Shown in pieces: positions 11,744 to 30,738 of a stretch of DNA of 64,000 bases. Both the position numbers and the translations under genes were made by a program. Where the stretch lies: positions 186,001 to 250,000 of the forward strand of contig JAKMXF010000309.1 of NCBI GenBank assembly GCA_024704765.1, in the 5' to 3' direction. Each line of letters starts with the position of its first letter. Position 1 is the first letter of the stretch. A model generated the notes under the pieces. That model worked only from the letters and a program-made list of their open reading frames with translations, had not been told where the DNA came from and did no database searches. This DNA is from Oopsacas minuta (Eukaryota; Animalia; Porifera).

Positions 11744-12421
11744 TATTATTGCTATACAATTCATATTATTCAAATGCATATAAGATCATACAAGGAATCA
11801 AATCACACACAACTAGACATATCAGAGAGAAAATGCAACTAACCAAATACAGCCGGGAAATGTGTGATTTTATGACCACAAAAAGAACTACAATCCAGTT
11901 TTTGGTGCGGGGATTAGTTAAAAAGAGCAGTAAATTTTAATGTTCCTTTTCTTATGACTGTAACACTTCGGCAGTGATCGGTTAAGGATTCTAATTGTAA
12001 TATTTTATGTACGTAATTGCCAGGGAAAAATCCATATACAAGTACAGTAGACCCTCTCTAATCCGAACATTGTTAATACTTTGGGTGATATAATATTTGT
12101 TACATCCCATTAATTGTGGAAGTGAAACTGATCAAGAAAATTCATGTTCACTGCGCTGTATGATTGTGCTTACTGCAAGGATATCGTTATTATTTCAACA
12201 TTTTCACAATATCATTCAGTTAAAATAGTTCCTCTTATAACAATGCCGCGTAAATTCAACTCTCCGTCCACGTACCGAACTATCCGCGTACCGAATTGTC
12301 CATCCCTACAAAAATATATGATTCATCGGCCGAAAATGTATACGCATATGAATAATAAATATACACAAACTGTTTTGACTAATAAAATGGTAAATATAAA
12401 CAATCACACAAAACATACAAA

Positions 12422-13276
12422 TCAATCATTTTCATCAGCCCATGTGGAAAGACAATGATATATATATGGGATGATGCAAGAAGCTAAAATAAGAATAATG
12501 GGTAAACTAACTAACAACAACAATAATACAGCTAAAAGTATAATTATAACATGAGGAATAATACAAATAGTTGAGTAATAGAATATTAGCATTGCGACTA
12601 TACGTAGGTAACCAGAATTGCGTAGATCCCAGTGTTTACGTGGTGGATGAGGTCTCTGCTCTATTAACCGTACAAACCAATTCGAACGTGTGGGTAGCCG
12701 ATAATAAGCATCATCATCGTCATTACGGTTACGACCACCTCCTGGATATGATAAATCCTCATCAGCTGCTTCGGTTGGACGGATTATATGGTCACCGGAT
12801 ATGTGTGGGAGATCCTTCAATGCAGTTTGGTAGTGCAAAACCTCGTCATATGAAGGAGGATTTAAAATCGAATGAATGTCTAGAGCCTCAGGGGTTAACT
12901 CGCTCCGATCAAATATAGGAGGTACATCTTTAAAGTGGATGTCTTTCGCGGAATAAACCGCATCAAATAGCGACGCGTATGTTTGTGTGGGAGATTTCGC
13001 GATTTGGAAATGTCCAGGTGAAATTTGAATAATCACAATCTTCCTCAAATCATCTTTATTATATTTAACAAAGATGTAAAAATGGTGTTGAGTGTATATA
13101 GAGTTTGTTACGAGAAAACAAGTATGTAACGGCGTATTAGCTAATATTCTATTTGATACGTCCGGAGAAAGATCATGAAAGAACCATTTCTCATTTATAC
13201 TGAGTAGACTCAAACTACGAGATGAAATCGTCACGTTTTGCGGTTCATTTTCAGACAATAATTGGAATTCTGCCAT
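12422..13276 (-). CDS. Degenerate SH2 domain + PPxY motif + C-terminal membrane anchor protein
   Basis: WFFHDLS..SNRIL..CFLVTNS..F.IFVK..F.SLFDAV resembles SH2; PPSYDEV; about 48 hydrophobic residues at the C-terminus; single exon, 284 aa. Confidence 0.65.
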   Translation of the reverse strand: MAEFQLLSENEPQNVTISSRSLSLLSINEKWFFHDLSPDVSNRILANTPLHTCFLVTNSIYTQHHFYIFVKYNKDDLRKIVIIQISPGHFQIAKSPTQTYASLFDAVYSAKDIHFKDVPPIFDRSELTPEALDIHSILNPPSYDEVLHYQTALKDLPHISGDHIIRPTEAADEDLSYPGGGRNRNDDDDAYYRLPTRSNWFVRLIEQRPHPPRKHWDLRNSGYLRIVAMLIFYYSTICIIPHVIIILLAVLLLLLVSLPIILILASCIIPYIYHCLSTWADEND

Positions 13277-13894
13277 CTGTTTGAATCCCGAGTATAACGA
13301 AAATATATTAGAATAAATATTATTATTATAAATGGTGATTTAAATATTTTGAGGTAGTATCTAGCTAGGCTGTAGTCCACGGACGACAACAGGGGGTAAA
13401 ATTGGTATAGGGGCCCACGAGTGAAATAGTTCGGGACCGCTGGGTAACATTATAATGAAAGAACGTTTTCACACATTTTATCACATTTCCAGGTAAAACA
13501 ACTAGAAAAATATCGGTTCGAAAGGCTTTGGGAAAATCTCAAAGTTTATACTTTGATTCAAACAATTATTTAGATTTCTAAAATCCAATAAAATTCTAAG
13601 ATCCGTGCACCCTCTGGACTATACTGTGCTGATCTCAGAGATTCTAAATTATCAAAATATATGTAAATTTCTAGTACATATGCAATAACGTAATACATAT
13701 CATGCGTGGGTGAAAAGACAACCTTTAGATTCTACACAAGATCACACATAAATTGCCACATATTAATATAGTATATGTAAATACGGGGAGAAAGTGTTAT
13801 TAAACAAAGTCAAGTATATCTTACTCAACTTTAGTAAATGTGTCACAATTCAAGCATCAAAAATATACAAAAAAGTTGTGTTAAAATTCGCTTA

Positions 13895-16800
13895 TCACCG
13901 ATCCTTATGACTAGGATAATGGGACTTTGTTTGTTTTGTGTGTGATTTCATTGTTCGTAGGTAAGCTTGTTTCGTTTCTAGTTGTGTGTCAAGACGTGCT
14001 AATGATGCGAGGACTTTGTTCTCCTCGATGGAGAGTTCAGAGTGTTGTGGTTCTCGCGGCAGTTCACTCCATGCTACGAAATCAGAATTTGAAGTTTTAG
14101 GAGCTAAAGAATTGTTGGATTGATAAAAGGCGTATTATTGAAATTAATAAACATCACACCCTCGCTAATCCGAAAAGTAGAACTGTTTCAATTGCAAAAT
14201 AATGTTTTCAGATTAGTGAAATGCATTGAAACAATACTATAGGATCTAGGAGTACATTCTTTCGACAGTTGTACGGGGCATTAGGCGTTCGTCGATCACC
14301 AACTCATGATCCCGATCCTTGCACCAAAAAGGATCGTGAATGATCGTTTTTTCGATCACTTTTCTGAAATTTATAAGCATCTCGGATGATCTCCTATATG
14401 TAGATGCACTATTACGTGGCGGTGCGACCGTCCGTCCTTCCGCGCTGCCCTGCGAAATCTATCAGTCTCGATTGCCACGTCAAAATGGGTACATTTTCGT
14501 AGATATACATTTTTGGATCTAGATTCTCAAATTTCAAATACTGTCAGCCTGAAACGATCGAAAATATGATCGAAAAATTTTCGGGAAAACATGATCGCGA
14601 TCTTCCATTTGTTCCTAATCCCATACAAATGAACCTCCACAAACAGAGTATGTTACACTGTACTTATAATGGATTCTCATTATAGTGCGAAATTTAACAC
14701 TTACAAGGTCTTGCATCAAACTTACCAATTGTGACTCGATTAATCTTGGGATGTCGTTTAGTTAGCATTCTATCTGGTTTATATGTATGAGTTACTGTAT
14801 CAGAATTATCATATTTTTTCGCAGTTACTGCATTATTACTTTTGCGTAAATTTTCGCGAATTTGGCTCCATATTAGGTGTATATCCACGTCAGTTGGTGT
14901 TGTGTCTAGTGATAATTCTACTTCCTGCTGTTGTAAGTTGGGTTTACGTAAAGCGATTGGGTTGTTGGTTGAAGTGAGTGATTTTGTTTCTCCAATGATT
15001 GACAGAGAATTGAGATTATTTCCTAGAATCATAGATAAGTAAATCAGTAAATGACAAAATCTTCCTATTAGGAACTTGTTTCGTAGACATTTAGCCAGGA
15101 TTATAACTAACATTCGTCATAAAAATCGGAAAAAATACTGTACAAGTTGGCAAGTATGAATATCCCACCTTTGCTGGGCGTAGAAACTCTATAAGGGAAG
15201 GTACCATGCGGATACAATGCTGATACAGGAATATAGTTAGAAAGATTCATGTATTCTGCTCCTGCAAATCTAACTCTCCTCTTAGAACGGACTGAGTGAG
15301 ATGTAGTACGAGATTTTGATGTTTTCAGTATACCAACTAGTTTTATTGGAGATTCTAAGGGAGATGATAAACATTCAAAAAACGAAGAATTACGAACTAT
15401 AAATTGTGCAAACTTTATCTTTTTGAAAAATTTTTACCAGAAATGTGTGGAAATGTGATTAATGGCCAAAAGGTGTGAAATTGTCCTATCTATAAAATGC
15501 AAGGCCCAAAGTTCAAATCTCCATCCCAAAATGTACATATGTGCCAATTTTCATACTAATCAGACTGCGAAATTTCGCACGATCACTAGACGGAAGTAGA
15601 CTTCACACATCGTCTATGCCAATAGGGCTAGGACACCACCATATATAGAAATTTCTCAAATCAACGGTAACTTAGTTTGTATAATATCGCACTACGTTAT
15701 AACTTAATTATTAAAAAGTCCTGAATTACATTGTAAATTGCCCAATGAACTCTCAATTAATATCATGCAATCTGTAAGGATATTTCCCAAACTTGATTAT
15801 AACATGACGTCGTATCTATAATATCAATTTCTGGATATACCTTCAACCTCTTTAGCTTGTAAATCAATATCTTGTGTTGTAACTGTTACACAATCTTGTT
15901 TCTTATATCCATCTGCTAATCCAACCCAATCCCACCTATAATTATTATTTTTAAGATCTTTTGAATTATCTGTTTTACGCGAGGGAGGTTGTGGAAGATT
16001 TTCTTGTAGAGAGGGGACTAAGTCAGGAAGAGGGGGTGTTGGGATTCGAGGTTCTTCTAATGAATCTTGTAAGTCAACCGCACATTCAACTGAATAAAAT
16101 AAGTATCAAAGTTTAGCAAATTAAATGGGATTTGGATGGGAGATTTTCAGCAAATGTTTACGGAAATTCTAGACAATTTGCAGGAATTTCAAAGCAATTC
16201 GCATACTGAAAATACATTATTGCTGAAGTCTAATGTTCTAAAATAATCATCGTTATTATGCATGAAAATGCTGAGATTTAATGGATAATACGTAAAAGAA
16301 TATCTTTAGTAAGATATATGATGTAATGAATGTTCAAACTCCATGGAAATGAATGGGAATTACAAATAGAGTTCAATTTTAGGTAATTTGAGTTTATTAT
16401 AAGTATAGGGAAAAGGGAAAAGCAAGAAATGGTACAGTTTAACCCACACAAATGGGGTCCCAGGAAGCCGAGAATGCTATCCTGTTTCGCCATCTCTGCC
16501 AAATTCCCCGTTTGTGGAGGTGACACTGTCTTGCTAATTAGCTACTACTAGTTGTCAGCTCCTATAAAATGGTTAGCAATTTCTCATCGAATTCCCCAAG
16601 ATATAATTTTGATAAAATGTCGAAGTAGTTTCCAATACACGTAATTCCAAATGAATTTCGGTAAAGAGCTTAACTATAACTTACTATTTTCAAATGTAGG
16701 AGATAGCGGAGGAGAATTAGAGCTTGTACTATCAGATTCCACAGAAATAACTCGAATAATATCATTCGTACTAATCTCATTATTAACTAAACAGCTGTTA

Positions 16801-19800
16801 CCAGGGTCTAATGAATCGGATACCATTATGCTATTACTAGCGGGTAATGGTTCATTAGGTAGCTTATGCATTAATGGTGTAGTATTGGGTTGTATTATTG
16901 ATGAGGGTAGAGTGATTATGTCTGGGTTTGGTTCAGGAGAATGTGAGATCCATGTATTGTGTGTAGTTGGTGGATCTGGAAATGATACAAGTTAATTGTC
17001 TGGAAATCTACATACCGGGTATAGAAGTCTAAATTGTACAAATATGGTCCTGGACTGTCATAATCTTAATCGGCTATACCATATTCCATCAAATAAATTA
17101 GCGGTCTCTTGAGCTTAGAAGCACAAAATCAGTTAATTCGAAATTTCTAATAAATACTGTATTACCAGCTGCTAGAAAAACGATCCAAGAGTGTGATATC
17201 GTCACCCTCAAGAAGAAGATTTTTGTTCAAATGCAGGCCACGCTTGAGCATGCAAAAAATTGGATAATTAGTTTCCCAAAATATTTTCGTTTACTTTTAA
17301 TTGAAAAAATATTTTAACGAAAACACGCTCACGAAAATTTTAATGAGCGCACGGACGCTTAATCAGAGTAATACAATAGTATTATTACTTTGAAAGTCAA
17401 GGCCATCAAAACCTATTCGATATTCGGATCAAAAGATTTCCCCACCAAAAGTGCTTTACCTTTGTTTGGTGTAATATTCAGTTGATGTACTGTTTTCGAA
17501 AGTTTGTATTCAGAGAATAGTTTCGCAGGTTCATTGTATGTATAACTACTTGGATATTTATTAGATTTCGCAGAAAATGGAGTTGTAGACATCTGTTTAG
17601 TAAACCGTTCTATATCCAAATTCGGTTGTTTCAATTCCTCTATCAATTGCTCTAATGCTGAACTCATAGAATTGCGATTTTCATCGCCTTTCTCATTCTC
17701 ATCAGGATATGATTCACCAGGAGGATCTATAGCTAATAGGATACGGCCTTGTCCTAAAGTCTGAGGGGAGCTACGCTTTAACGTGTTAAGGTTAGGCTCT
17801 GAATCAGATGAAGTTACTTTAGAATTTGGAGAAGGTAGACTAAAGATAAAGGAAGATAAATACAGCCAACTCGCGTTATATCGAAGCTCAAGGAACCGCG
17901 ATAACTACTTCGGTATAAACGGATATTCTGATATACCGCGTTCGATGTAACGGGAGTCTACTGCAATTACGTTAAGTAGACCTCGCTAATCGGAACAGGT
18001 CCCAAATGTTAAACCTTTGGAAATTTGGAAACATTTCAAATGGCCTAATAATATCAAACTCTACTGCTGACAAATACATAATACAGTACAACCTCGATTA
18101 TTCAGACGCTTTTGACAGGTCTCAACCAGTCCAGATAATCAAAGTTGCACTGTACAATATTACACATGTGACAGCCTTTTCACCTTTGTACAACTCTCGA
18201 AACAATGTACTCACTCCTAGTTCCTATAGTATTGTTTCAATGCATTTCCACTAATCTGAACGAATTATTACGCAATAGGAGCAGTGCCGTTCGGATTAGC
18301 GAGGGTGGATTGCATTACTACAGTCAAATTTAACTGTCTCATTACGTATTAACTTTAGTCTACTGCAAATATTATAATATGTAAGAATCATTGAAAAGTG
18401 GATATTACATCATATTTATTATCACCAAAATTTCATTATTGAGGAATTAGACAAAATGGGCAATATTGTGGTCACATAATAAATATAATTATATTATATT
18501 ACAAAATATCCAAATATTTTCGGGGGATTTTGTAGCCAAAACAGTAAAATTGTTAGAAATTCAGAAAGGTATGCTCAGTTCAATAGTGACACCGATTCAG
18601 TTATAGGCTTATAGCCATCGGTTAATCGCGTCACAACACCTCCAAAAGCGATTAATCGGGTCAAACAGGTTTGGCTCCGAATGAACTCGAGTACCAGACG
18701 TATTCTCCCCCAATTAATATACCTAGAGACGTCATTTCCTCAAACAACAGACCTCAATGGTCACCTTTACTGTACTGTATTAATTATGCTTGCAAATAAA
18801 AGATAGTAACAATTAAAGTTTTGAAATTTAATGCATTTCTTGATAAAAATGAAAATTTAAATTACATTACTTATTAATCGATCAGTCTAACCGTCAAATC
18901 TGCATTATGTGTAACTATATGGATTTTACCATATATGGTATTCTTCAAAGGAATACAAATCTTGCATAAGAGAAAAGATACAATATAAGGCAATATCAGG
19001 CTGAGTCCTGCGAATAGAAATGTGAACATTGTCGAATACTCAATGACGTGATCTACTATCTTCAAGATTTGAAAAAGTTCACTTCTTAATGGAGCTGTTT
19101 TATGGCAAATATCGAATATTATCAACTTGAAAAGAATCGAGAAATGTCCAATGACTTCAGTGTATAAGAATAACGCGAAAATGGAATAAATCAAAAGGGA
19201 TAATTTTGTAAAATTTTGCAACATTTTTAACTGTCTCTGATATTTACCGTCTTGACTACCACGTGAATCACGTAAATGGTTTGTATGTTGTTTCAAAGAT
19301 TTGTAGAGGAGGTATAGCAGATAAATTACATAAATAAACGTCACAATTAGCGTACTCAAAAGAATGAGATACGCTACATAAAATGTAACACGAATTAGCA
19401 GAAGGATTGTAAAGAAGGGAATTAAGGAAAAGAGACTAATCAGAACTTTTGTGTAACAGAAACGAATTTCTTTCCCTTTTGAAGCGTAATACTGTATTAA
19501 ATAGTGTAGCAATGCAACCAGCATTATGAGGAAAATAAATGCAGAAATAGATGAGAGAGAAACCAGCAATCCAGTGTAAGGGAAATTGAAATAGAATCGT
19601 GGAGTTATCACATCAAATGAACACGATTCGTTATGGTATGTTAAATTACGTATATCAGCGTATAATATTATAAAACCGCGTTCAAATAGACCACAAAGTA
19701 AAGTAAAGAATTCCATTAATGAGATTATTAATAGTAAAATACATTTTACCATCAATACGTAGATATCTGTAATTCTCGTCAAAGCATTTGGATTCACATT

Positions 19801-22800
19801 TCCTTGATTCAATCTCAATTTATAACTCCGGTATGTAGTACGAAGTGTCAGAAAAATATAGAAAATCAGACTCAAATTCAAAGCAAAAAGGGAAATGATG
19901 ACAAATCCAGTTAAAATATCGAGAATTATCTCTACTGAATGAGGAAATTGTAATCCGCCAATATTTGTATAAGAAAGACCCATTTTATATCTATTTGATT
20001 TGGTTTGATTTGATAGAATAACATATTCAAATACACATTTTATAGTAGGAAATTAGCGGTGATTATAATTATCTAATCATGCAACGTTATGTAGGGAAAA
20101 CTTCAAAATAATTCCCTGATTCTTATCATTTGATAATATAAAGATGTAATAAAGGTCAAAGTTTTAACCTTAGTATTAGAATTAGTGTATAAGGAAATAC
20201 ATTATGATTATTTCAATGAAAATAGCTTAAGAACATTGATTTAGATATTATATAGTTCAGAGAATGGTTATGGCTTATGAAATATAAATGTATATATCAG
20301 GTGTGATATGCTTTTAAGATTATTGAGCAATATTTGTCGAACCCTACAATCTGTAGGGAAAGAGTTAGCAAATTGTCCTAAGGTGTTTTTGAAATTTCAC
20401 ATGCGGTGTTTGATGACATTAATCATAATTGGGGGACCAGACCTCCCCTCTAAGGTACCCCCGGATCATACTCATGGTCCGCCTTGGTTACAAATCCCGA
20501 TTTATGGCTGACAATATGCACAGATATACTCTTCAGTACGAATAAAATTGGGTCCATAATGTTCACAGAAAACAAACCAATATCAGAATTCATATGCTAC
20601 ATTGTACCTATTTTGAGATTGAAATGAACTTGCTCGTTTAACGTTAACAACAGCTTTATCTTGTTTGTTGATGTTTGAAGAAGCAAGATTAGGTTTCCCA
20701 GACTTCGAACTCTTTTTATCTAAACAAAAACAGGAAATTAATGTCGTTTCGGGAGCTTAAAACGTTCTTAAATGTTAATATTTAATAGTTTGATTGTTTG
20801 TTTGTTTGTTTGTTTGTTGTATATTTAAATTATATTTGAGAAGATACACTGTAAATTGTACCACGATATTGTAATTACCAATAATTATTAATAGACAACA
20901 ATAATGATTATAAATTAAAGTATTTTTCCCCGTAGGAAGAATGAATACAAGTATTATTAACAAAAAGTTGAATAACATTGCAATACTGTAATCTAGTAGG
21001 ATGGTAGTCAGCAACATTAACTGATTTAAAATATTCAGAATATAAGAGCTGGAAATCGCTGAAGTTCAGTATTTTCTATAATCATTACTTACTAAATATA
21101 GATTTATCTGTAATTAGCAGAATATTGTCTCAAAATTTTTATTGCTAATTTTCAATAAAATACTATGAAAATATGATATTCCATATGATATAGTGGAAAT
21201 ATTAAATGGGATCATTCCATATATATTCCAAATATCCCATCGGTCCTTTTGGTTGGTAACTAGGAGCGTAAATATTTATTTTTAGGAAAAAAATTACCTA
21301 GGAGGGAGTCTAAACTGGTTGCTTTCGTTCCCACCGAATATTTAGATATTTCAATCAACGGATGTATAGTTTCAATTAAGAATTCTGAAAGTAAAGATTA
21401 TCCAATTGCATGGCAAAAGCAAGAAGGCCAGTCTTGTGTAGGTGTGTGTGTGTGTGTCACATGATTAGGATGTCCATGTGATAAGTATACTATACATAAA
21501 TATGCTCACAGCATGTGATTATCTAGGAGCGTAAGGTACTCCTTGGACGTATGATTTGTGGCCAAAATATATAAGGAAAGTTGAAAATTAGCTTATTCCC
21601 TATATCGCAACATTAATCAACTGATTTATGAGTATGGAAATTTGGCAGGATGAACAGGAGCATGATCTCATGAATTTTTATATTCTTTGGCTGTCTGATA
21701 TTGAATTCCAACCAGCCCAATTTGTTGTGAACATATATCCTAAGTGGCAGGAGGTAAGTCACTGACTTAAGGTGTAACCTGTACGTACGTATGCTAGCAA
21801 ACTGAAATATATGTAATTCATAATCAAAATTAAGACATTCGTATATATTGCGTTGTCGCAAAATCTTTTGAAAGTATAAAAATGGTACAAAAACACGTAA
21901 ATTAAAAAAACACCAAACAAAAAATATTTTCCCTGAAAAGTGTCTAAACAGATGGTATTGTGTTGATATTTACAAATTTCCTTACTTTTGTTGTTGTTGT
22001 TGACATGTAACCGATGTGACATACATATATTATAATAATATAATCATTGCATCATATCTTTTTAAACATTATTAATTCAAACAAATCAAATTTTAACAAA
22101 AGGATTTTAATTTCTCCAGTATGCCACCAAATTCTCCTTGATAATTACCTTCTTTTCGTATCATATCATTCGGCATTGATTTACAAATCAATTCTCCTCC
22201 AACGGTGGCAGAGAATTGTTTTCCTGGTGAAGCTTTAAACGAGAATCTTCCTACTCCAAGTGCGTTCTCGATTTCCGATTTGAAAAGCTCAAAATCGTTT
22301 TCATGAACATATTCGACTTGTACGTTTACCAATTCTTCATTCTCCATTTTTGTGTAGAAAAATAATAAATAAACAATTATTGAAATACCTTACAGTTGTT
22401 TTATTATAAGAAATATAATAGAGCCTATAATAATACAAAATTCTTAATGTAAGTAACATAATATCTTTTAGAAATCATACTAGTGAATTCCAAATTTGTG
22501 TCAGCCATAAAAATAGAGTTGCTTGTTCTGAGAAAAAAAGAGGCAGGAAAAACATGTGCATAAGTGTAAAGATTCGCAGATAAAAAATACTTTACAAGAG
22601 ACTATAGCTTAGATTTGAATCATCCCATGTGTGGACATGGGGTATTCTATTTTACATTTCTACTGTCCCGATTTCTATAGTTTCTCCACCAAAGTGGCAC
22701 ACATTAATTGGGGCAGTTATCGCATATTCCATAAAATTGAGAGTATTTTGGAATGTAAGTTTTGTAACTCTCCTAGGCCACGAATAAATATCATCTCCCT

Positions 22801-25800
22801 TTTTGATTTATGGGAATATAATGTCAGTGGGCCACAATATTCGTTCGCTAATTTTGCTCTCCTGCTCCTAGTCGCACCTCTAGATGCAATGATACTGCAT
22901 CTCTCGCAAGCGCTCGTTTATATGTTTTCGGGATTACACTAATTACAAGTGTGCAGGAATCAGTGGCGGCCATATGGGGTGTTCAGGGTGTGCGGTGCAC
23001 AGGGGCCCCGATAATGTGGGAGCCCCCAAAGAGATCATTTGGAAGGAGAGTAGATTAACCGAGATTTTTGGGGAATGACTGGGCGCATAAAATCCCAGGT
23101 CAACCTTTATTCTAGTTTGAGTATAGTTAATTGTTTAGCTGATCTATGTATTCATGAAATTTGAAATGACATTAGTCAATAAACATAGGGTATGGCTACT
23201 ACAGGAATTTAAATGTATTTTTCTATATGTGGTAGAAATGTCTTTAAATCGCTATTTCAGTGTCTAAATATTAAAAAAAATTCTGAGGGCACCCCTTTAG
23301 GATAGCTCGCTGCGCTCGCGCTTGGACCCCCTAGGCAAATCCTGGGTCCGCTCCCTGTTATGCATGTGCCATGTGCATAATTTTGATCTTTTTTTATAAT
23401 TGAGGAGGGGGCCCCAAGAAAAACATTGCACAAGGGCCCTCAATATCCTATGGCCGCCACTGGCAGGAATTCACATATTTTGTATCCAATAGGTGATAGG
23501 AATAGGTGGATTCTAGTTATCGAATTAAATGTAAATCCAGCAAGTTGAATGTTGGTGAAGTCCACTCAAATTTACAAAAAGTTGGGGTTAATTTTGGCAC
23601 CAAAGTGACTCAACAATCAAATATCAAGTATTGGTCCAAAGTACGCCAGATATATTCTGACGCTCCCACCCGCCTCCTCTCTTAGATCATCAATGTAGAG
23701 GGGCACTGGGGCAGTTATATGTTACACATATCACCAAAAAGTACAAGTATATTATAAAATACTATTTTAGGTCCTCAAATAATTGCCAGGACCATTCACG
23801 ACAAGCTTAACATAAAAGTTCGTCCTGATAAGCTGTTAATGTAGAAACAAAACTTCACAAAAAGTGAGCATCTTATTAGACCTAATCAGCAAATAGCACA
23901 GATATTGGTTAAAATATTGTAAATTTTGAGTTTTTTTATTAATATTTTTTATCTAATTTTAATCTCACAATAAACACTTAATTAAAACAATTTTTATGAA
24001 GATCCAATGCGCTATTTTACAATACTGCTTTCGGCTCAGTATTGTTGATGGTTGATGAGTGGTCATACACGTCCATCAATTAGGTCAGTGGCTCACTAAT
24101 TATATACAAAATTCAAAGAATATATATATACACTCCATGAGCATAATATAAAGCAGTTGGTTCTATATAAATAGGTGATGTCAATATAATACTTTGGAGT
24201 AAGGATACATAGGATTCCTATGAAAGCAGTATTGTATGGTAATTAGTGTGCATAATAGTAATTCGTGTATTAGCATGGAAAATTCTTGTAAAATACGATT
24301 TGCTAGTAGGCAATTATGTTCTAACAAACTAGTACCATCTGACATTAGAACCTTCAAATATGTAGAAAGTTACAAACCAATGAACACAACAAAACATGAT
24401 AAGGAAGAGAATAACCGCGGTCCAGCTTACGGATATTCTGGAGTCTATGGGGTCATGCGAGCAGGTATACAATTTGAAAAATAGATCAATCTGGTCAAAA
24501 TACAGTGGATGCCGGTTATAAGAACATGCAAGATATAAGCACCATCCTCTGGAAAATGTTCTCATATATTCCTGTATATTTTATGCCTGTTATAAGAACA
24601 TGTATTCCTGCTCCAAAGGGTGTTTTATAACCGACATCCACTGTACCCAGTAAAATCATTTCTCTGTGATTTTTATCAATTTCAAAGCCATAATACCATA
24701 TACGGGCATAATAGCTGATGAAAATGACCTAACTATTATATAATTTAGACAGATAAGCATAATGACTTGAGTAACGCAATGGTATTCTAGAATATTCCAG
24801 ATACTAATACTCTATTGCATATTGAAACCACAACAATAATTGTGAAGGCTGCCCAAATAAATATGCACATATTCTCATATACTATATAAGTAGACTACAC
24901 AAGTAATTTTCTATATTCCTATTCACATTCCTTTTCACTTTCTTACTGAATTGTATTACAAAAGTTATCGCGGTAGTTTCAATTTGAAATGGCAGACGCA
25001 AAGGTTCATAATATAACTGTTCAGTATTGTGGCGGATGAGGCTACACCAGCCGCTACGACAAGTTTGTAGCGGCTGTTGAGGCGGACTTTCCTGGAAAGT
25101 TTAAGCTTGAAAAGAAAGTTGACGCGGGGATAACTGGGAATTTTGAAGTGACACACGGTGAGGTGCTAATTCACTCAAAGAAAGCGACTGGGAAGTTTCC
25201 CATTGATGGTGATTATGCATCAGCAAAAGAAGCTTTGGCTAAATTGTTGTAGTCAAGCTTAGGGCCAGCAGTCTACATGTAATCTCCCCAACTATTGTTC
25301 GTAACACTTTCTATCAACTCACACTGTGACGATTGAAGTAGAAGACTATGTTATACTTTAAATCTGATTTTTCGAGCTTGTTAGTTAGGTTCTTATGGTT
25401 TTTGGTTTGATTATTATGTATTCTGCTATTATTATTAAATTTCTATGTTAGAAAATGCAAAAATCTATTATTTGCATAATTAAGAATAATGGCCGAATTC
25501 CAATGGGGAATTAATGGTGGTTTATCGGTTGGAATTTGTCGAGACGAAGGGTAAATTTGAGGCTCTAAGAATTTACGTAAGGTAACGTTTACCCTAAAAT
25601 TGTGTCGTTCTTAACACAAAGCGGCACGAGTCCGAGACTTGTTAGCTCATCATCCACTTAACTAAAATATCAGGCCAAATAATATTTACTCCATGGCGAT
25701 AGGTAAACTTCTACAACCTGGTTAAAGTTGTTCTGGTAGAGGTCGCAGAGCCAAACCCGGGCCCGAGTCAGGCTTTAGGCCTATACTTTAGGAATCCTAA

Positions 25801-28800
25801 TAATCCAGCGTTAAAATTCGAAATTATTTCATCTTTTATATTAGAGTCAGAAACATCATTGAAATTTGTATTTAATACAATTTCTGACTGTACGATCTGG
25901 TTCATCAATTTTCCTTTCAATTTTAGAAAATATTCTAATCAACGTTGTAGGTATGCGTCGGGCCGTTGCGACCTCTCCCATCTCGAAACAAAAATTCCAT
26001 GCTCTAGTGTTTTTGAGTTATCTGGACAGATTTTTGGATATTCGTGAGAGCTATTCCCTACGTGTTGTGGCACAGTTACAGTGTCTCTTTGTAGGTTTTT
26101 GGAGTTTAGAAATCAAATTTGATGGATTAGCTCTATTTCTAAATTGTTGCAATGTTCCAGTGTTTCAATATCCTAATAGAGTTGTTTAGAACAGTATTTC
26201 CAACGTATATTTCGAAAAAACTCAAGCTGAAGCATAAAAAGTCCAAAGTTGACATACCAAAATCCCATGCTATCAGAAAAGATGTTATGTGCAGGGCATT
26301 TGTCATCAACAAACTATATATTGTATACAGGAAGGGGCAGCTAATGATCATAATGTGTACAGTGATTAGTAAAGGATGGCTTTATAACTAACTCCGATGA
26401 TGCAAAATTGAGAATAAATTTCTTCCCTACACTTGAGGGAAAATCCAAGAACTTGGGAAGAGACCCAAGCGTTGGGGAATTGGTCTAGAGACTAGAGCAT
26501 AATACAAATTTTCTTGATAAATATTTGCTTTGTATACACGTTTGGACCCGAAAATGGACCTCATCATTACTACGTATATTTTTAAAACAAAAAGTGAGTG
26601 AGTATCGTATTAGACAATATCCGTAACTAAACAATTGTGTAACTATAGCATGAACAGCATACGTATATAGCTAGGATACCTCAAGATTGTTATATCTACA
26701 ATCTAGAAGTGGAGTCCAAGGTACTAGCGGCTTGCCAGCAACCGTTTATTAGTGATCTTCCCCAAGTGCGTCAACCGTGGAGAGATTCGTGTTTATTGCA
26801 TTTATTCAAATTCAAACGGAAATACTGCTTTTGGCTCAGTATGTTGATATAGTCAAGGCTCACTCCAAAATAAAATAATTCTGACAACTATTTATAGGCA
26901 AAAGTACTATACTTATACGTTTGTGGTTGAATTATAATTACAATCAACTCACGCTCAAGGGACTGCAATCATTACTTTGATATACGCGGATATTTGGATA
27001 AACCGTGTTCGATATATCAAGAGTTGACTGAATAAATATTTGAGTTTTTAATTCAAGATATATATCTTGGCAGTCGTGGGGTATTTTAAGAGCTTTTACT
27101 CAAAGTTCTGGCCAGAAGTCAGCGTGTACATTTGGCATACCTAACAACCTATTTGAGCCATATCCCTATACGGAGCTCCCATTTCCCCTATACAATTGCC
27201 AAAATCCCTGTACACGCCAAATTTTTTTCACTCGCTGCGCCCGCCCGTATAGAGAGTCACTGTCCAACTGCACCAAAAAAATTTCGCTAAACAAAATGAA
27301 TATGTGCAGGGGGTTGGTCCAAACTGTTTGGGACGGGACAGTTCATGCAAGAAATCTAGTTAAAACAAGTACATTATGTACATATAGGGAATTCCGGTAC
27401 GGTTGGCAGGTATGCATTTGACTAATACAAGAGTAATTCTACATTCATTCCCCACTGGTTAATTAATAATAACTCCTACATATCACTACACAATATATTA
27501 GAAATACGTAATGTAAAGTTTAGACACATCAAATTCTTACAAATACTACTAATATAGTTAGGAGAAACCAGACAACTGCATAATTCACAAGACCACCCCC
27601 ATTCCCTTTCTAAGAATTTATAAAAGGAAAAATTCTAACAATATTTCACTAGAGCCGCCCCCTCATAATTATTCATCGTCTAATTAAGATTCTTCAAATT
27701 CCTGTGTATTGACATCAAGATACACGTAAGAGATTATAATAGTTTATCAAGTAATATCATATATCAATGCATTAACCATTGTTCTATAGCTATTCTAGGT
27801 CAAAAGCATGCTGAATTCAATAGTTAATTATTACAGAAGAATCTCTTTAATACAACCTCCAACGTATAAAGTTTATTCGCTTTATTCGGTGTTCGTACTA
27901 ACCAGAGTAATACCAATTGAATAACAATTGTAGGGATCTGATTCCGTGTAAATATTCGTTTGTCTTACCTGGAAATTCGTATTAACGAGATCCCACTGTA
28001 ATTCTATCGGGTTTTTGTAGTAGAAATTCTGAGCTCAAATATATGACAGATTTTTAAACAGCCTCTTACATTCAAGTAGGATTTGTCAAACACAATATAG
28101 AATTCCCCAAAGTCTAAATAATAATGGATACTTATGGGAATTGACCACCAAATTATATTCACTTAGAATTAGCTATAAAATCAAAATAATTAAAGTTTAA
28201 GAGTCGATTAATAATTGGCTTTTGAAATATTTGTACAGAGGTACAGTCAATTCCCGTTATACCGAAGGTTGAAATTGTGCAATTATAGTCCCAAACTATA
28301 AAAGTAACATGAATTATATAGAAATAATCGCGGTGCCTTGAGTTTCGGTATAACAGGGGTTAGCTGTATATTTTAATAGAATAGCAGTCAAGGTTGCTTA
28401 TTATGAACAGAGGTAATGAAATAAACGAATATCCGTAGCATTTGTGTTCAGCCGCTCTCATGTATTTGTGTTATGCACAGGTTTCTGATCAATGTGGGCA
28501 TTCGCATTAAGCAGCCTTGGTATTTTAAAGTACAGTAGAACTGGATAAGAGGCCGTTCAAGAGTTACGTAACGCAATTTCCCTAACTTTTGACCCCACCC
28601 CCTCCCTGTGTCACGCTTTTTCACCCTTGTAATACAAAAAGAATTGGGCTCTCACACTTCGCATACCACCCCCCTCTCCCTGTAGCGTTACGTAACGTTT
28701 GAACGGTCCTAACACGCACACCTTCGGGAAACAAAATTCATGTCGTCTTATCCAAGTTATACTTGTAGGAGGATAATATTGTCTCAAAAGAAACAGAAAA

Positions 28801-30738
28801 TGACGAAATTGCAGTTTATTAACATTCGTAAAGCTTTAATATTTTAAAAACTAACTTATAATTATATTTTTCATAGAATGGCAAGCAACAATTCTGAAAT
28901 TCATATCCACATAAAATATTGTAGTGGATGAGGCTACCTTAAATATTTCAACGAATTCAAATCGATTGTAATCAAAGAATTCGGTGACGACAAGTTCATT
29001 TTCAAACCGGAAAGAGCTGTCGGAGTTACTGGAGAATTTGAAATCAGTATTATCAATGGATCCGAACCTCAACTTGTCTTCTCAAAAGCACAAACAGGAG
29101 GCCTGCCGTTCGAAGAAAGTACAATGAAGGGAATTTTCGATTCTTTACGAAAATCACTCAAAAAATGAAATATTTGTATATATAAATTAATTTAATATTA
29201 ACTCTATGTGAAGATGAGAGTAGAAGATTCGTTCATACTTTTTAATCTGATTTTTCTGTTAATACTAAATTGATTTATTAATTTTTAGAGATAAACATAT
29301 ATTATGAAAATAGAAAATACAACTCCGGTCATATCACACACGGATATAAAGAAATACCCGCTTATATTGAAGCATGAAATTGTACAAATATGGTCCCAAA
29401 CCATCAAAGTAACATAAATTTGATGGGTTTTATTGAACTCAATTGCGAAATGACCCGATTTTTGATATGTGATGGATATTACTATGTTACGTCACGTTAA
29501 GGAACTTCACCTAAATCTGGGTGGTTTCAATAAAACAAAGGCTTATATTGTAGTGTAACTTCCACAAACGAGGTGTCAGGGACGCCGAAAAATGCTACCG
29601 TTTCCCCGTTTCTGAAAGTTCGTTTGCATGGGACCCGGAATTCTATTTATATATTTTCACTCAGTTTTCACATGCCCCGTTTGAGGAGATTGTACTATAC
29701 ATACTCTCAAACTTCGCTTAGTAAGAAGAAAATAGTAGATCAAAATTTCAATGTATTTATCCATAGTACTTACTTGCAGTAGTTCTAGCTTGAGTGAGCA
29801 CTTGTCTCTGTTGTAACTTTCTCTGATTAAGAACTTCTTTCCTATGCTTCTCTTCAGCTGCTTCGAAGGCTTTTCTCTTTTCTCTGTTATCTTTCTGTCT
29901 ACGGAGAGTTTCTTCTGCATTGAATCTACATTAAACATTGGATTTAACGACATCGGCTTTAACGCCAAATCGCTTATAACGACTCATTTTGTTTGCCCAG
30001 AATCTCGCAGCATTATTCTGCACACACCATACCTCGGGTATAACGACCTGCCAGATAACGACACATTGAATTAGCGACACATTTTCTATGCCTGCGCCAT
30101 TAAAATCTCATCGAATATTACAACTTCTGTGCTGTTTGTACTGTGGACTTCAGAAAAGTGCACTAATTAGTGAATTATTCAGGGTTTAATAATTGATATA
30201 ATTTTAAGCCAATTAAATTCTCGCCTGTTTTGAATCAACAACACCTGGCTTCTTACGAAAATGCATATTTAAAGCTATTGTACGTACAGTGTAATGCTAA
30301 AATATCACATGGATAAATTTGGATGTCATCAGGTATAAATGCATATTTAAAGCTTCCTCAGATTTAGCGACAAATCGGATATAACGACCTTTTTTTGCCT
30401 ACCAAACGAGTGTCGTTAAATCCAATGTTTACTTTATAATAGTTCGTATAAATTTTAAGTTCATTTTTGTGATTCATAATTGCGCTCCATTTTCAGGGCG
30501 GGAGCGTGCTTAATGCTCTGGTCACTATTCATAAATTCCTGTAATTATTCTATTATTTCACAATAAAAACCAACCGAAATCTCTCAGAAATTCGTTTCTT
30601 TTCTTCCTTCTTTCTCTCCTCCAATTCTTTAGCAAAGTTCTCCTGTACTTGTCTATAACGTATGGAATATGCTCCTATAGGGGGAGACATGCCCCAAAGA
30701 TCTGTATTCGTAGTCAACTGTCCACGATTAGGAAACAT
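13895..30738 (-). CDS. Multi-exon CEP126 (KIAA1377)-like centrosomal coiled-coil protein with PP1-docking motifs; host of nested genes
   Basis: Hand-assembled GT-AG exons with compatible phases and no in-frame stop: 30738-30575, 29925-29774, 29716-29705*, 23705-23645*, 22527-22481*, 21384-21298, 20719-20608, 17839-17460, 16975-16685, 16089-15841, 15354-15169, 15022-14726, 14103-13895 (* tentative); 2247 nt, 748 aa. The N-terminal ELEE..ETLRRQK..EKRKAFE..EVLNQRK..TKFE, then LATSNSIF, SLDSL, GILK/RVRF and C-terminal LSIEENKVLASLARLD all resemble CEP126 as I recall it. Confidence 0.62.
14290..14610. repeat. GATC-rich interspersed repeat in the last intron of the CEP126-like gene
   Basis: 12 GATC tetramers counted in about 320 bp, clustered at both ends. 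Confidence 0.5.
15420..15640 (+). repeat. Intronic dispersed repeat; second copy at about 59575-59780, fragment at about 1595-1635
   Basis: Shared blocks aaaggtgtgaaa, ccaattttcat.ttaatc.gactgc and cacatcgtc(c/t)atgcca. Confidence 0.55.
17863..17963. mobile_element. Pogo/Tigger-type MITE
   Basis: cagccaactcgcgttatatcgaa ... ttcgatgtaacgggagtctactg inverted termini. Confidence 0.65.
17975..18312. mobile_element. Pogo/Tigger-type MITE (CTCGCTAATCCGAAC subfamily); related partial copy at 14161-14275 in inverted orientation
   Basis: agtagacctcgctaatcggaac versus right end gttcggattagcgagggtggattg; the internal segment aaatgcattgaaacaatactatagga is shared with 14179-14205. Confidence 0.65.
18874..19983 (-). 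CDS. Orphan intronless seven-transmembrane (GPCR-like) protein
   Basis: 369 aa with about 7 hydrophobic helices, extracellular N-glycosylation sequons and a Cys (RNLTYHNESC), and a basic third intracellular loop (KYQRQLKMLQNFTKL); no rhodopsin DRY or NPxxY signature. Confidence 0.75.
   Translation of the reverse strand: MGLSYTNIGGLQFPHSVEIILDILTGFVIISLFALNLSLIFYIFLTLRTTYRSYKLRLNQGNVNPNALTRITDIYVLMVKCILLLIISLMEFFTLLCGLFERGFIILYADIRNLTYHNESCSFDVITPRFYFNFPYTGLLVSLSSISAFIFLIMLVALLHYLIQYYASKGKEIRFCYTKVLISLFSLIPFFTILLLIRVTFYVAYLILLSTLIVTFIYVIYLLYLLYKSLKQHTNHLRDSRGSQDGKYQRQLKMLQNFTKLSLLIYSIFALFLYTEVIGHFSILFKLIIFDICHKTAPLRSELFQILKIVDHVIEYSTMFTFLFAGLSLILPYIVSFLLCKICIPLKNTIYGKIHIVTHNADLTVRLID
22093..22347 (-). 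CDS. Rdx/SelW-fold paralog lacking the CxxU/CxxC motif
   Basis: VNVQVEY-VHENDFELFKSEIENALGVGRFSFK..GGILEKLKS aligns with the SelW copy at 28878 (IHIHIKYCSGUGYLKYFNEFKSIVIKEFGDDKFIFK..KGIFDSLRKS); the redox loop is deleted. Confidence 0.7.
   Translation of the reverse strand: MENEELVNVQVEYVHENDFELFKSEIENALGVGRFSFKASPGKQFSATVGGELICKSMPNDMIRKEGNYQGEFGGILEKLKSFC
22961..23462. mobile_element. hAT-type MITE, 502 bp
   Basis: 14-bp TIR cagtggcggccata; perfect 8-bp TSD gcaggaat at 22953-22960 and 23463-23470. Confidence 0.85.
24503..24643. mobile_element. Pogo/Tigger-type MITE, 141 bp
   Basis: TIR cagtggatg(c/t)cggttataa at both ends, TA TSD. Confidence 0.85.
24989..25252 (+). CDS. SELENOW: Selenoprotein W (copy 1), Sec encoded by TGA at 25037-25039
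   Basis: MADAKVHNITVQYCGGUGYTSRYDKFVAAVEADFPGKFKLEKKVDAGITGNFEVTHGEVLIHSKKATGKFP...LAKLL*; 87 aa; the SelW homology continues past the TGA; SECIS in the 3' UTR. Confidence 0.95.
25315..25380 (+). promoter_or_regulatory. SECIS element of SelW copy 1
   Basis: GUGAC(25326)-GAUUGAAGUA-GAA-GAC(UAU)GUU-A-UACUUUAAAUC-UGAU(25365): G.A/A.G quartet, about 10-bp helix II, unpaired AA, apical mini-stem; helix I caactc/gagcttg. Confidence 0.85.
28244..28366. mobile_element. Pogo/Tigger-type MITE
   Basis: cagtcaattcccgttataccgaa ... ttcggtataacaggggttagctg, TA flanks; interior shared with the copies at 39653 and 50401. Confidence 0.75.
28533..28765. mobile_element. Pogo-type MITE carrying a nested PIF/Harbinger-type MITE (28549-28709)
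   Basis: Inner element: inverted ggccgttcaa..ttacgtaacgc / gcgttacgtaa..ttgaacggtcc with TAA on both sides. Removing it restores cagtagaactggataacacg ... cgtcttatccaagttatacttg. Confidence 0.7.
28878..29168 (+). CDS. SELENOW: Selenoprotein W-like (copy 2), Sec encoded by TGA at 28929-28931
   Basis: MASNNSEIHIHIKYCSGUGYLKYFNEFKSIVIKEFGDDKFIFKPERAVGVTGEFEISIINGSEPQLVFSKAQTGGLPF...RKSLKK*; 96 aa; a 3' splice site (tttcatag) directly before the ATG suggests a 5' UTR intron. Confidence 0.93.
29195..29265 (+). promoter_or_regulatory. SECIS element of SelW copy 2
   Basis: GUGAA(29208)-GAUGAGAGUA-GAA-GA(UUCG)UU-CA-UACUUUUUAAUC-UGAU(29248); perfect 7-bp helix I uauuaac/guuaaua; colinear with the copy-1 SECIS. 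Confidence 0.88.
29929..30434. mobile_element. Tigger-type MITE, about 506 bp, in intron 1 of the CEP126-like gene
   Basis: 21-bp inverted repeat taaacattggatttaacgaca, repeated ataacgac subterminal motifs, TA at 29927-29928 and 30435-30436. Confidence 0.8.

Follow-up and report, generated by a model that had tools for sequence, protein, structure and literature searches.

A 64,000-nucleotide (nt) stretch of the genome of the glass sponge Oopsacas minuta (positions 186001-250000 of contig JAKMXF010000309.1, hereafter the window) holds a cluster of selenoprotein W (SelW)/Rdx-family genes and a gene for a predicted seven-transmembrane (7TM) protein. It raises the question of whether these genes lie between neighbouring genes or inside the introns of a single host gene. 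The guests are real, conserved genes, and the exons around them are conserved coding exons with conserved splice sites. Comparison of the locus with its counterparts in related sponges leads us to favour, with moderate confidence, a nine-exon host gene with four guests in two of its introns.

The window belongs to an assembly of 61.46 Mb in 365 contigs (GCA_024704765.1), and its G+C content is ~35% throughout. Genes of O. minuta have been reported to contain 1.59 introns on average, with a mean intron length of 341 bp, and to lie ~2 kb apart (PMC10280926). Using a word search with the exon at 17839-17416, we found homologs at the level of open reading frames (ORFs) in ENA assemblies, and we fetched nine syntenic loci (L001-L009), which represent at least five related glass sponges. 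Conservation was tested by tblastn and blastn of the window against these loci.

The proposed host would be a single gene on the minus strand, composed of the following exons, for which amino-acid identities refer to the syntenic loci.

30575-30738, minus strand: host exon 1, 164 nt, with the ATG at 30738 and the donor at 30574; part of the deposited model LOD99_5738
29774-29925, minus strand: host exon 2, 152 nt, ending in phase 1, with a GTAAGT donor at 29773
20608-20719, minus strand: host exon 3 (the seventh exon of the chain drawn in an earlier note on this DNA), 112 nt, phase 1 in and phase 2 out; in the deposited model LOD99_5737
17460-17839, minus strand: host exon 4, 53-64% identity in six loci, a 100% match to LOD99_5737
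16685-16975, minus strand: host exon 5, 38-44% identity in five loci, matching LOD99_5737
15841-16089, minus strand: host exon 6, 41-54% identity in five loci, matching LOD99_5737
15169-15354, minus strand: host exon 7, 49-67% identity in six loci, matching LOD99_5737
14726-15022, minus strand: host exon 8, 64-71% identity in five loci, with the motif FSLDxTPTDVDIHxIWxQIRENLRK
13895-14103, minus strand: host exon 9, with the stop codon at 13895-13897, 68-77% identity in five loci, matching LOD99_5737

Exon 1 displays 85-89% amino-acid identity in four related loci, with conservation of its ATG and its donor, and a TATA-like CATAAAT sequence is found ~40 nt upstream. Exon 2 is 62-86% identical in four loci, and its acceptor and donor are at the same position in five species. 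The TAG/R acceptor and the GT donor of exon 3 are conserved in seven loci, as is its motif VKRxxSFQSQ. The other conserved motifs of the host include ALEQLIEELKQPNLDIERFTKQMST, KRRVRFAGAEYM, which in exon 7 is part of the longer pattern KLVGILKTSK...KRRVRFAGAEYM...FPYRVSTPSKG, FSLDxTPTDVDIHxIW at the start of the exon-8 motif, and SELSIEExKVLASLARLDTQLE in exon 9. In two related species (L001:10019-10681 and L006:9896-10564), the sequence aligned to exons 4 and 5 is a single uninterrupted open frame; the intron that O. minuta has at 17459-16976 thus seems to have been lost in them or to be read in frame.

Joined together, the nine conserved exons form a stop-free coding sequence of 679 codons. 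The predicted 679-aa protein would start with a charged helix and continue as a long body that is mostly disordered and contains short conserved motifs. Intron 2 of this gene (9054 nt) would house three independent, intronless Rdx-family genes: two SelW genes, which run antisense to the host and are each followed by a selenocysteine insertion sequence (SECIS)-like element, and an 84-aa paralog devoid of selenocysteine (Sec) and Cys on the same strand as the host; intron 3 (2768 nt) would house an intronless 7TM gene resembling those of G-protein-coupled receptors (GPCRs), with its own TATA-like box.

The earlier note had proposed a longer chain of 13 exons, 2247 nt and 748 codons, which is indeed without internal stops, consistent in phase and bordered by GT-AG at all introns. 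Four of its exons have no counterpart in the list above:

29716-29705 (12 nt), 23705-23645, 22527-22481 and 21384-21298, minus strand: the unsupported exons of that chain, within the span 21298-29716

No protein or DNA conservation of these four exons was detected at any syntenic locus by tblastn or blastn, whereas every other exon of the chain is conserved. Within the 9-kb interval there are 2557 open pieces, each 12-150 nt long and bordered by AG..GT, so that a stop-free chain is expected by chance, and the four exons total 207 nt, so that their removal keeps the frame. Despite its open frame and its GT-AG borders throughout, we consider this exact 748-aa model, with its 12-nt micro-exon and its exons at 23705, 22527 and 21384, highly improbable. 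The ~6-kb intron in which that chain placed the SelW genes likewise gives way, in the conserved model, to the single 9054-nt intron with three Rdx-family genes.

The first two guests were identified by scanning for C-x-x-TGA followed by an open frame, which yielded two convincing Sec candidates, both on the plus strand.

24989-25252, plus strand: SelW1, intronless, 87 codons, with the ATG at 24989, a CGGU motif, the Sec TGA at 25037-25039 and the stop codon at 25250-25252
28878-29168, plus strand: SelW2, intronless, 96 codons, with the ATG at 28878, a CSGU motif, the Sec TGA at 28929-28931 and the stop codon at 29166-29168

When six-frame translations were read through one TGA each, both matched the Pfam Rdx profile (PF10262) above its curated cut-off of 22.6 bits, with scores of 43.9 bits for SelW1 and 35.7 bits for SelW2. 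Taken alone, the pieces that follow the Sec residue score 30.3 and 21.4 bits, respectively. The Sec TGA is kept in 12 of 12 SelW copies (two from the window, ten from related loci), within CGGU and CSGU/CCGU motifs; it is present in six orthologous copies of SelW1 and in four orthologs of SelW2. The two products thus resemble selenoprotein W/Rdx proteins in their length (~87-96 aa), the position of CxxU after the first strand, their match to the Rdx hidden Markov model (HMM), the conserved in-frame TGA and a kink-turn stem-loop in the 3' untranslated region of their genes, and they differ from them in that their genes are intronless. A conserved TATA box is located upstream of SelW1.

The stem-loops are positioned as follows.

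29207-29251, plus strand: SECIS-like stem-loop of SelW2, a kink-turn with GUGA ... AA ... CUGAU
25325-25368, plus strand: SECIS-like stem-loop of SelW1, a kink-turn with a 12-bp helix

These elements of ~45 nt begin ~40-75 nt past the SelW stop codon and are near-identical across copies and species. Their core comprises (G/A)UGA, 12 nt, AA in the loop and CUGAU, and an RNAalifold analysis of seven copies gave a 12-bp helix with two compensatory pairs. The element is always found 3' of a SelW ORF and on the strand of that ORF, even where SelW1 is inverted. Unlike canonical SECIS elements, these SECIS-like elements mostly carry GUGA in place of AUGA, and the Rfam SECIS models did not match them at either gathering or lax thresholds (E up to 10, 111-nt slices). 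The only weak Rfam matches were to models of C/D small nucleolar RNAs (snoRNAs), which share the kink-turn boxes; we rejected a snoRNA reading given the length of ~45 nt, the internal 12-bp helix and the invariable location 3' of a Sec gene on the same strand. One additional SECIS-like copy without a recognisable ORF was found at L007:9741-9782.

Other Rdx-family copies were noted outside the window. Contig C11 of O. minuta (832357-833735, minus strand) carries three tandem Rdx-family genes with one in-frame TGA each, scoring 31-52.9 bits. This second cluster brings the number of Sec-type SelW-like genes in O. minuta to at least five. In one related species SelW1 is duplicated in opposite orientation (L009:17879-18256 and 19404-19781), and the same locus contains two antisense ORFs (12095-13428) that look transposase-like, with an N-terminus judged by eye to be THAP-like.

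The third guest belongs to the same family but has lost the redox motif.

22093-22347, minus strand: redox-dead Rdx paralog (hereafter Rdx-dead), a stand-alone 84-aa ORF with VHEN at the CxxU position

We call it redox-dead because VHEN replaces CxxU. Six species retain its ATG, its stop codon and its full length of 84 codons, with 58-73% identity and an invariant C-terminal ILEKLKS. Searches of the Pfam database did not detect it, and an hhalign comparison with the SelW profile gave an E value of 6e-4 with 39 columns in register. Its AlphaFold2 model (predicted local distance difference test, pLDDT, of 71) shows a beta-alpha-beta-beta-beta-alpha arrangement, the element order expected of the thioredoxin-like Rdx fold, and the top match of this model in the PDB by Foldseek was mouse SelW (2NPB; template modelling, TM, score of 0.60), followed by bacterial SelW-related proteins and MIEN1. 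Rdx-dead thus shares the fold of the SelW/Rdx proteins, and it differs from them in having neither Sec nor Cys and in missing ~4 loop residues, and yet it is strongly conserved. Its use as an exon downstream of exon 2 was rejected, there being no AG ahead of its ATG.

Upstream of Rdx-dead, two minus-strand segments (24017-24128 and 23858-23894) contain the conserved motifs TAGTGAGCCACTGACC and a perfect hairpin, ATACTG-AGCCGAAAG-CAGTAT. Counterparts are present at L001:6920-7065, L006:6918-7001 and L005:1523-1604, with more copies elsewhere in the latter two loci. These sequences may represent a promoter element or a small repeat. As a hairpin or repeat motif, the conserved block at 24017-24128 was rejected as a hidden exon.

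The fourth guest is situated further downstream.

18874-19983, minus strand: 7TM gene, intronless, 369 aa, between host exons 3 and 4

It is conserved at 38-55% identity in six loci. The AlphaFold2 model of its product displays seven long helices (predicted TM score, pTM, of 0.73). In a VIA-align search the top 50 rows were nearly all GPCRs, with Z values of 11.2-13.5, on a scale on which helical bundles can reach ~Z 13 by chance; Foldseek also returned GPCRs, at E values of 0.04 or weaker. The resemblance to GPCRs lies in the seven long helices and in structural matches that are almost all GPCRs, over ~240 aligned residues, whereas sequence identity to these matches is ~10% and the product matches no Pfam family, the 7tm families included. 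The gene has its own ATG, a conserved TATA-like box ~55 nt 5' of it and no upstream acceptor, which makes it an independent gene. On the same grounds we rejected the reading that exon 3 serves as its 5' exon.

All four guests are complete ORFs conserved across species and would lie wholly inside an intron, and the 7TM gene and SelW1 have TATA-like boxes. None of the four is present in the NCBI annotation; that SelW2 is unannotated follows from the consecutive accessions of its two flanking genes, and for the 7TM gene it is the exact product that is missing. The guest complement put forward in the earlier note (two Sec-containing SelW genes antisense to the host, a redox-dead paralog and a 7TM gene on the sense strand, all overlooked by standard annotation) is thereby confirmed.

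Whether the exons flanking these genes belong to one transcript is a separate matter, since the deposited annotation has two models here, to which the window exons are 100% identical: LOD99_5738 (KAI6650898.1, 110 aa) and LOD99_5737 (KAI6650897.1, 640 aa; P0009). LOD99_5738 consists of exon 1, exon 2 and five read-through codons (SKYYG, then a stop). LOD99_5737 begins with the first 66 codons of the Rdx-dead ORF, passes from an AAG/GTAATT donor to 20719 and continues with the 3' exons; the seven 3' exons of the host (20719 to 13895) coincide exactly with its own. The junction of exons 3 and 4 across the 7TM gene (20608/17839) is therefore already part of a deposited model, and the question narrows to the donor of exon 2 and the acceptor of exon 3.

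Five species have the exon-2 donor at an identical position and in phase 1 (GTAAGT, GTGAGT, GTGAGT, GTTTGT and GTACGT, all with G at +5 and T at +6). Past this donor conservation ends abruptly, and the sequence is unalignable up to the SECIS-like element of SelW2. The read-through tails after exon 2 vary among species from 5 to more than 25 codons and differ in sequence. Conservation of the donor together with unalignable tails indicates that the donor is used and that no conserved terminal exon follows it. Exon 3, for its part, has no ATG and is open from its first base in all seven loci, where its length ranges from 109 to 118 nt with differences in multiples of 3 only. Together with its conserved acceptor, this means that it must be preceded by a coding exon with a phase-1 end. 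Exon 2 has such an end and exon 3 a phase-1 start, and the codon at their junction would encode Asn in three of the species and Asp or Gly in one species each. Between the two exons, comparison of the related loci revealed no other conserved block on the sense strand. These orphan splice sites, conserved and of matching phase, point to a splice from exon 2 to exon 3 (29774/20719), which we hold to be somewhat more probable than its absence.

At least five assemblies keep the order exons 1-2, SelW2, SelW1, Rdx-dead, exon 3, 7TM gene and exons 4-9, which holds in every assembly that reaches far enough. This order survives even in the most divergent assembly, despite the duplication and inversion of SelW1 and the entry of transposase-like ORFs. 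The putative intron 2 spans from 6.2 to ~17 kb among the assemblies.

Could the locus instead comprise two separate genes as deposited, with the SelW genes intergenic and only the 7TM gene nested? These are the models of NCBI, AAG/GTAATT in the Rdx-dead ORF is a good phase-1 donor in O. minuta, and both introns would be short, which fits a compact genome. However, O. minuta and L004 are alone in having this donor. L001 and L005 lack it, L003 and L006 have it shifted out of phase, and no phase-1 GT is common to the Rdx-dead ORFs of all six species. The annotated splice would also discard 18 codons, which belong to the last helix, together with the stop; this stretch is one of the best conserved in the Rdx-dead ORF, and the Rdx fold requires all 84 aa. 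Moreover, the tail of LOD99_5738 is not conserved, yet the donor that it ignores is, and the annotation pipeline seldom calls nested genes. We therefore regard two genes as deposited as unlikely. The fusion of Rdx-dead codons to the host through 22149/22150 in LOD99_5737 probably reflects an error of the annotation and represents at most an isoform specific to the species, and LOD99_5738 is probably just the 5' end of the host gene.

The absence of conserved sequence past exon 2 also bears on a second arrangement with two genes, whose ends would have escaped detection. Exons 1-2 would then be followed by a short, fast-evolving terminal exon before the 3' end of SelW2, and the downstream gene would start with a tiny unconserved first exon or with a spliced leader that provides a start codon at the 20719 acceptor. 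A trans-spliced leader has been reported on ~4% of long reads in the glass sponge Aphrocallistes vastus (PMC10282587), and the O. minuta sequence would permit an alternative mentioned in the earlier note, in which a 57-nt intron leads to a stop at 29661. Nevertheless, there is no conserved block from the exon-2 donor to the SelW2 SECIS-like element in four species, even though exons 1-2 are ~85% identical, and exon 3 is coding from its first base without an ATG. This arrangement requires two unseen elements where one splice suffices, and we find it rather unlikely. In particular, a separate 123-aa gene ending at the TGA at 29661, which had been named as the outcome that would dissociate the SelW cluster from the host, is not supported, as nothing past the exon-2 donor is conserved.

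Several points weigh against the nine-exon host. An intron of 9 kb is ~25 times the species mean of 341 bp (PMC10280926), and the deposited annotation splits the locus into two models. The 29774/20719 junction comes from sequence comparison. A match in phase arises by accident with one chance in three, and, as exon lengths are conserved, the species do not count as independent observations here. Glass sponges also use spliced-leader trans-splicing (PMC10282587), which might in principle act on the exon-3 acceptor, and a very short unconserved exon, terminal after exons 1-2 or first before exon 3, is possible. Weighing these points, we retain the nine-exon host: nesting in one host gene, as first suggested, is favoured by the comparative evidence in a simpler form, from exon 2 to 20719 and from there to 17839, with the first of these splices deduced.

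The identity of the host is a further matter. It had been assigned to CEP126, a centrosome/cilium protein, and our searches do not support this. The Pfam K1377 profile (PF15352) had no match at E values up to 10 in the exon translations, the 640-aa product, the exon-2 ORF or the six-frame translation of the whole genome. A profile of exon 8 searched against 1.84 billion proteins produced three matches, namely the O. minuta product and two short ORF-sized proteins, and no CEP126. Word searches with the host exons returned sponge ORFs only and no annotated full-length ortholog from another species. In the ESM Atlas, the 640-aa product is poorly modelled (mean pLDDT of 0.38) and exons 1-2 form one long helix; look-alikes sought there for the C-terminal part of the host and for exons 1-2 gave nothing usable. 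As the K1377 profile, a defining feature of the family, finds no match, we do not file the host under CEP126. Some short motifs of the host look like those of CEP126, which is a lead, not a test. The host shares with CEP126 a general layout only, with a charged, coiled-coil-like helix at the N-terminus, a long body of low complexity and a C-terminal region that is conserved; it differs in its length (679 aa compared with 1117 aa for the human protein) and in its lack of a match to the K1377 HMM. Human CEP126 is described as having a coiled coil at residues 49-121 and a C-terminal domain, its localisation at the centrosome, pericentriolar satellites and cilium base has been addressed in human data, and its reported homologs are those of vertebrates, none having been found in Drosophila or C. 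elegans (PMC4293463).

Two other features were noted around the host and its guests.

12422-13276, minus strand: intronless gene for a 284-aa protein, directly downstream of the host and annotated by NCBI
26500-26572, minus strand: weak C/D-box match to SNORD18 (21 bits, E 2.1), in sense orientation within the putative host intron

The 284-aa protein has a weakly SH2-like N-terminus (Pfam E 0.16) and a hydrophobic C-terminal segment, and it is 69-76% identical in five related loci. The SNORD18-like match is not conserved in the related loci.

The arrangement had been described as unusual, a label that does not fit what is reported for glass sponges. In A. vastus, 2432 genes (12.4%) are nested, 'many of which are conserved', compared with 83 called in O. 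minuta, and low counts such as the latter have been attributed to gene-modeller settings (PMC10282587). With ~12% of A. vastus genes nested and those of O. minuta under-called, the locus is an ordinary nest of a kind frequent in glass sponges, not a new kind of system. Like the nested genes of A. vastus, its guests are intronless, would reside in the introns of a multi-exon host, are conserved between glass sponges and were missed in the O. minuta annotation. It differs from them in that four guests would occupy two introns of one host, three of them from one family and two needing Sec recoding, and in that the splice across the SelW cluster is one that we infer rather than observe.

A functional coupling between host and guests, such as a redox or transcriptional link, is speculation. 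One could imagine that the nest is not incidental: the host would be a glass-sponge-wide protein, possibly a divergent CEP126-type component of the centrosome or cilium base, and the SelW cluster, including the conserved paralog devoid of a redox centre, would have been kept in its intron since before the lineages split. Expression of host and guests would be coupled, for instance by interference with the antisense SelW genes, and the Sec-less Rdx protein would have acquired a new non-redox role, for example as a binding or regulatory partner. We consider this joint reading very improbable.

The analysis corrects the annotation of this O. minuta locus, from which four real genes are missing, two of them coding for selenoproteins, and in which LOD99_5737 combines an unrelated gene with a portion of the stand-alone Rdx gene. 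It provides a cross-species example of how automatic pipelines lose nested genes and Sec recoding in glass sponges. The sponge selenoproteome gains SelW copies, with five Sec-TGA Rdx genes in two clusters and one redox-dead paralog.

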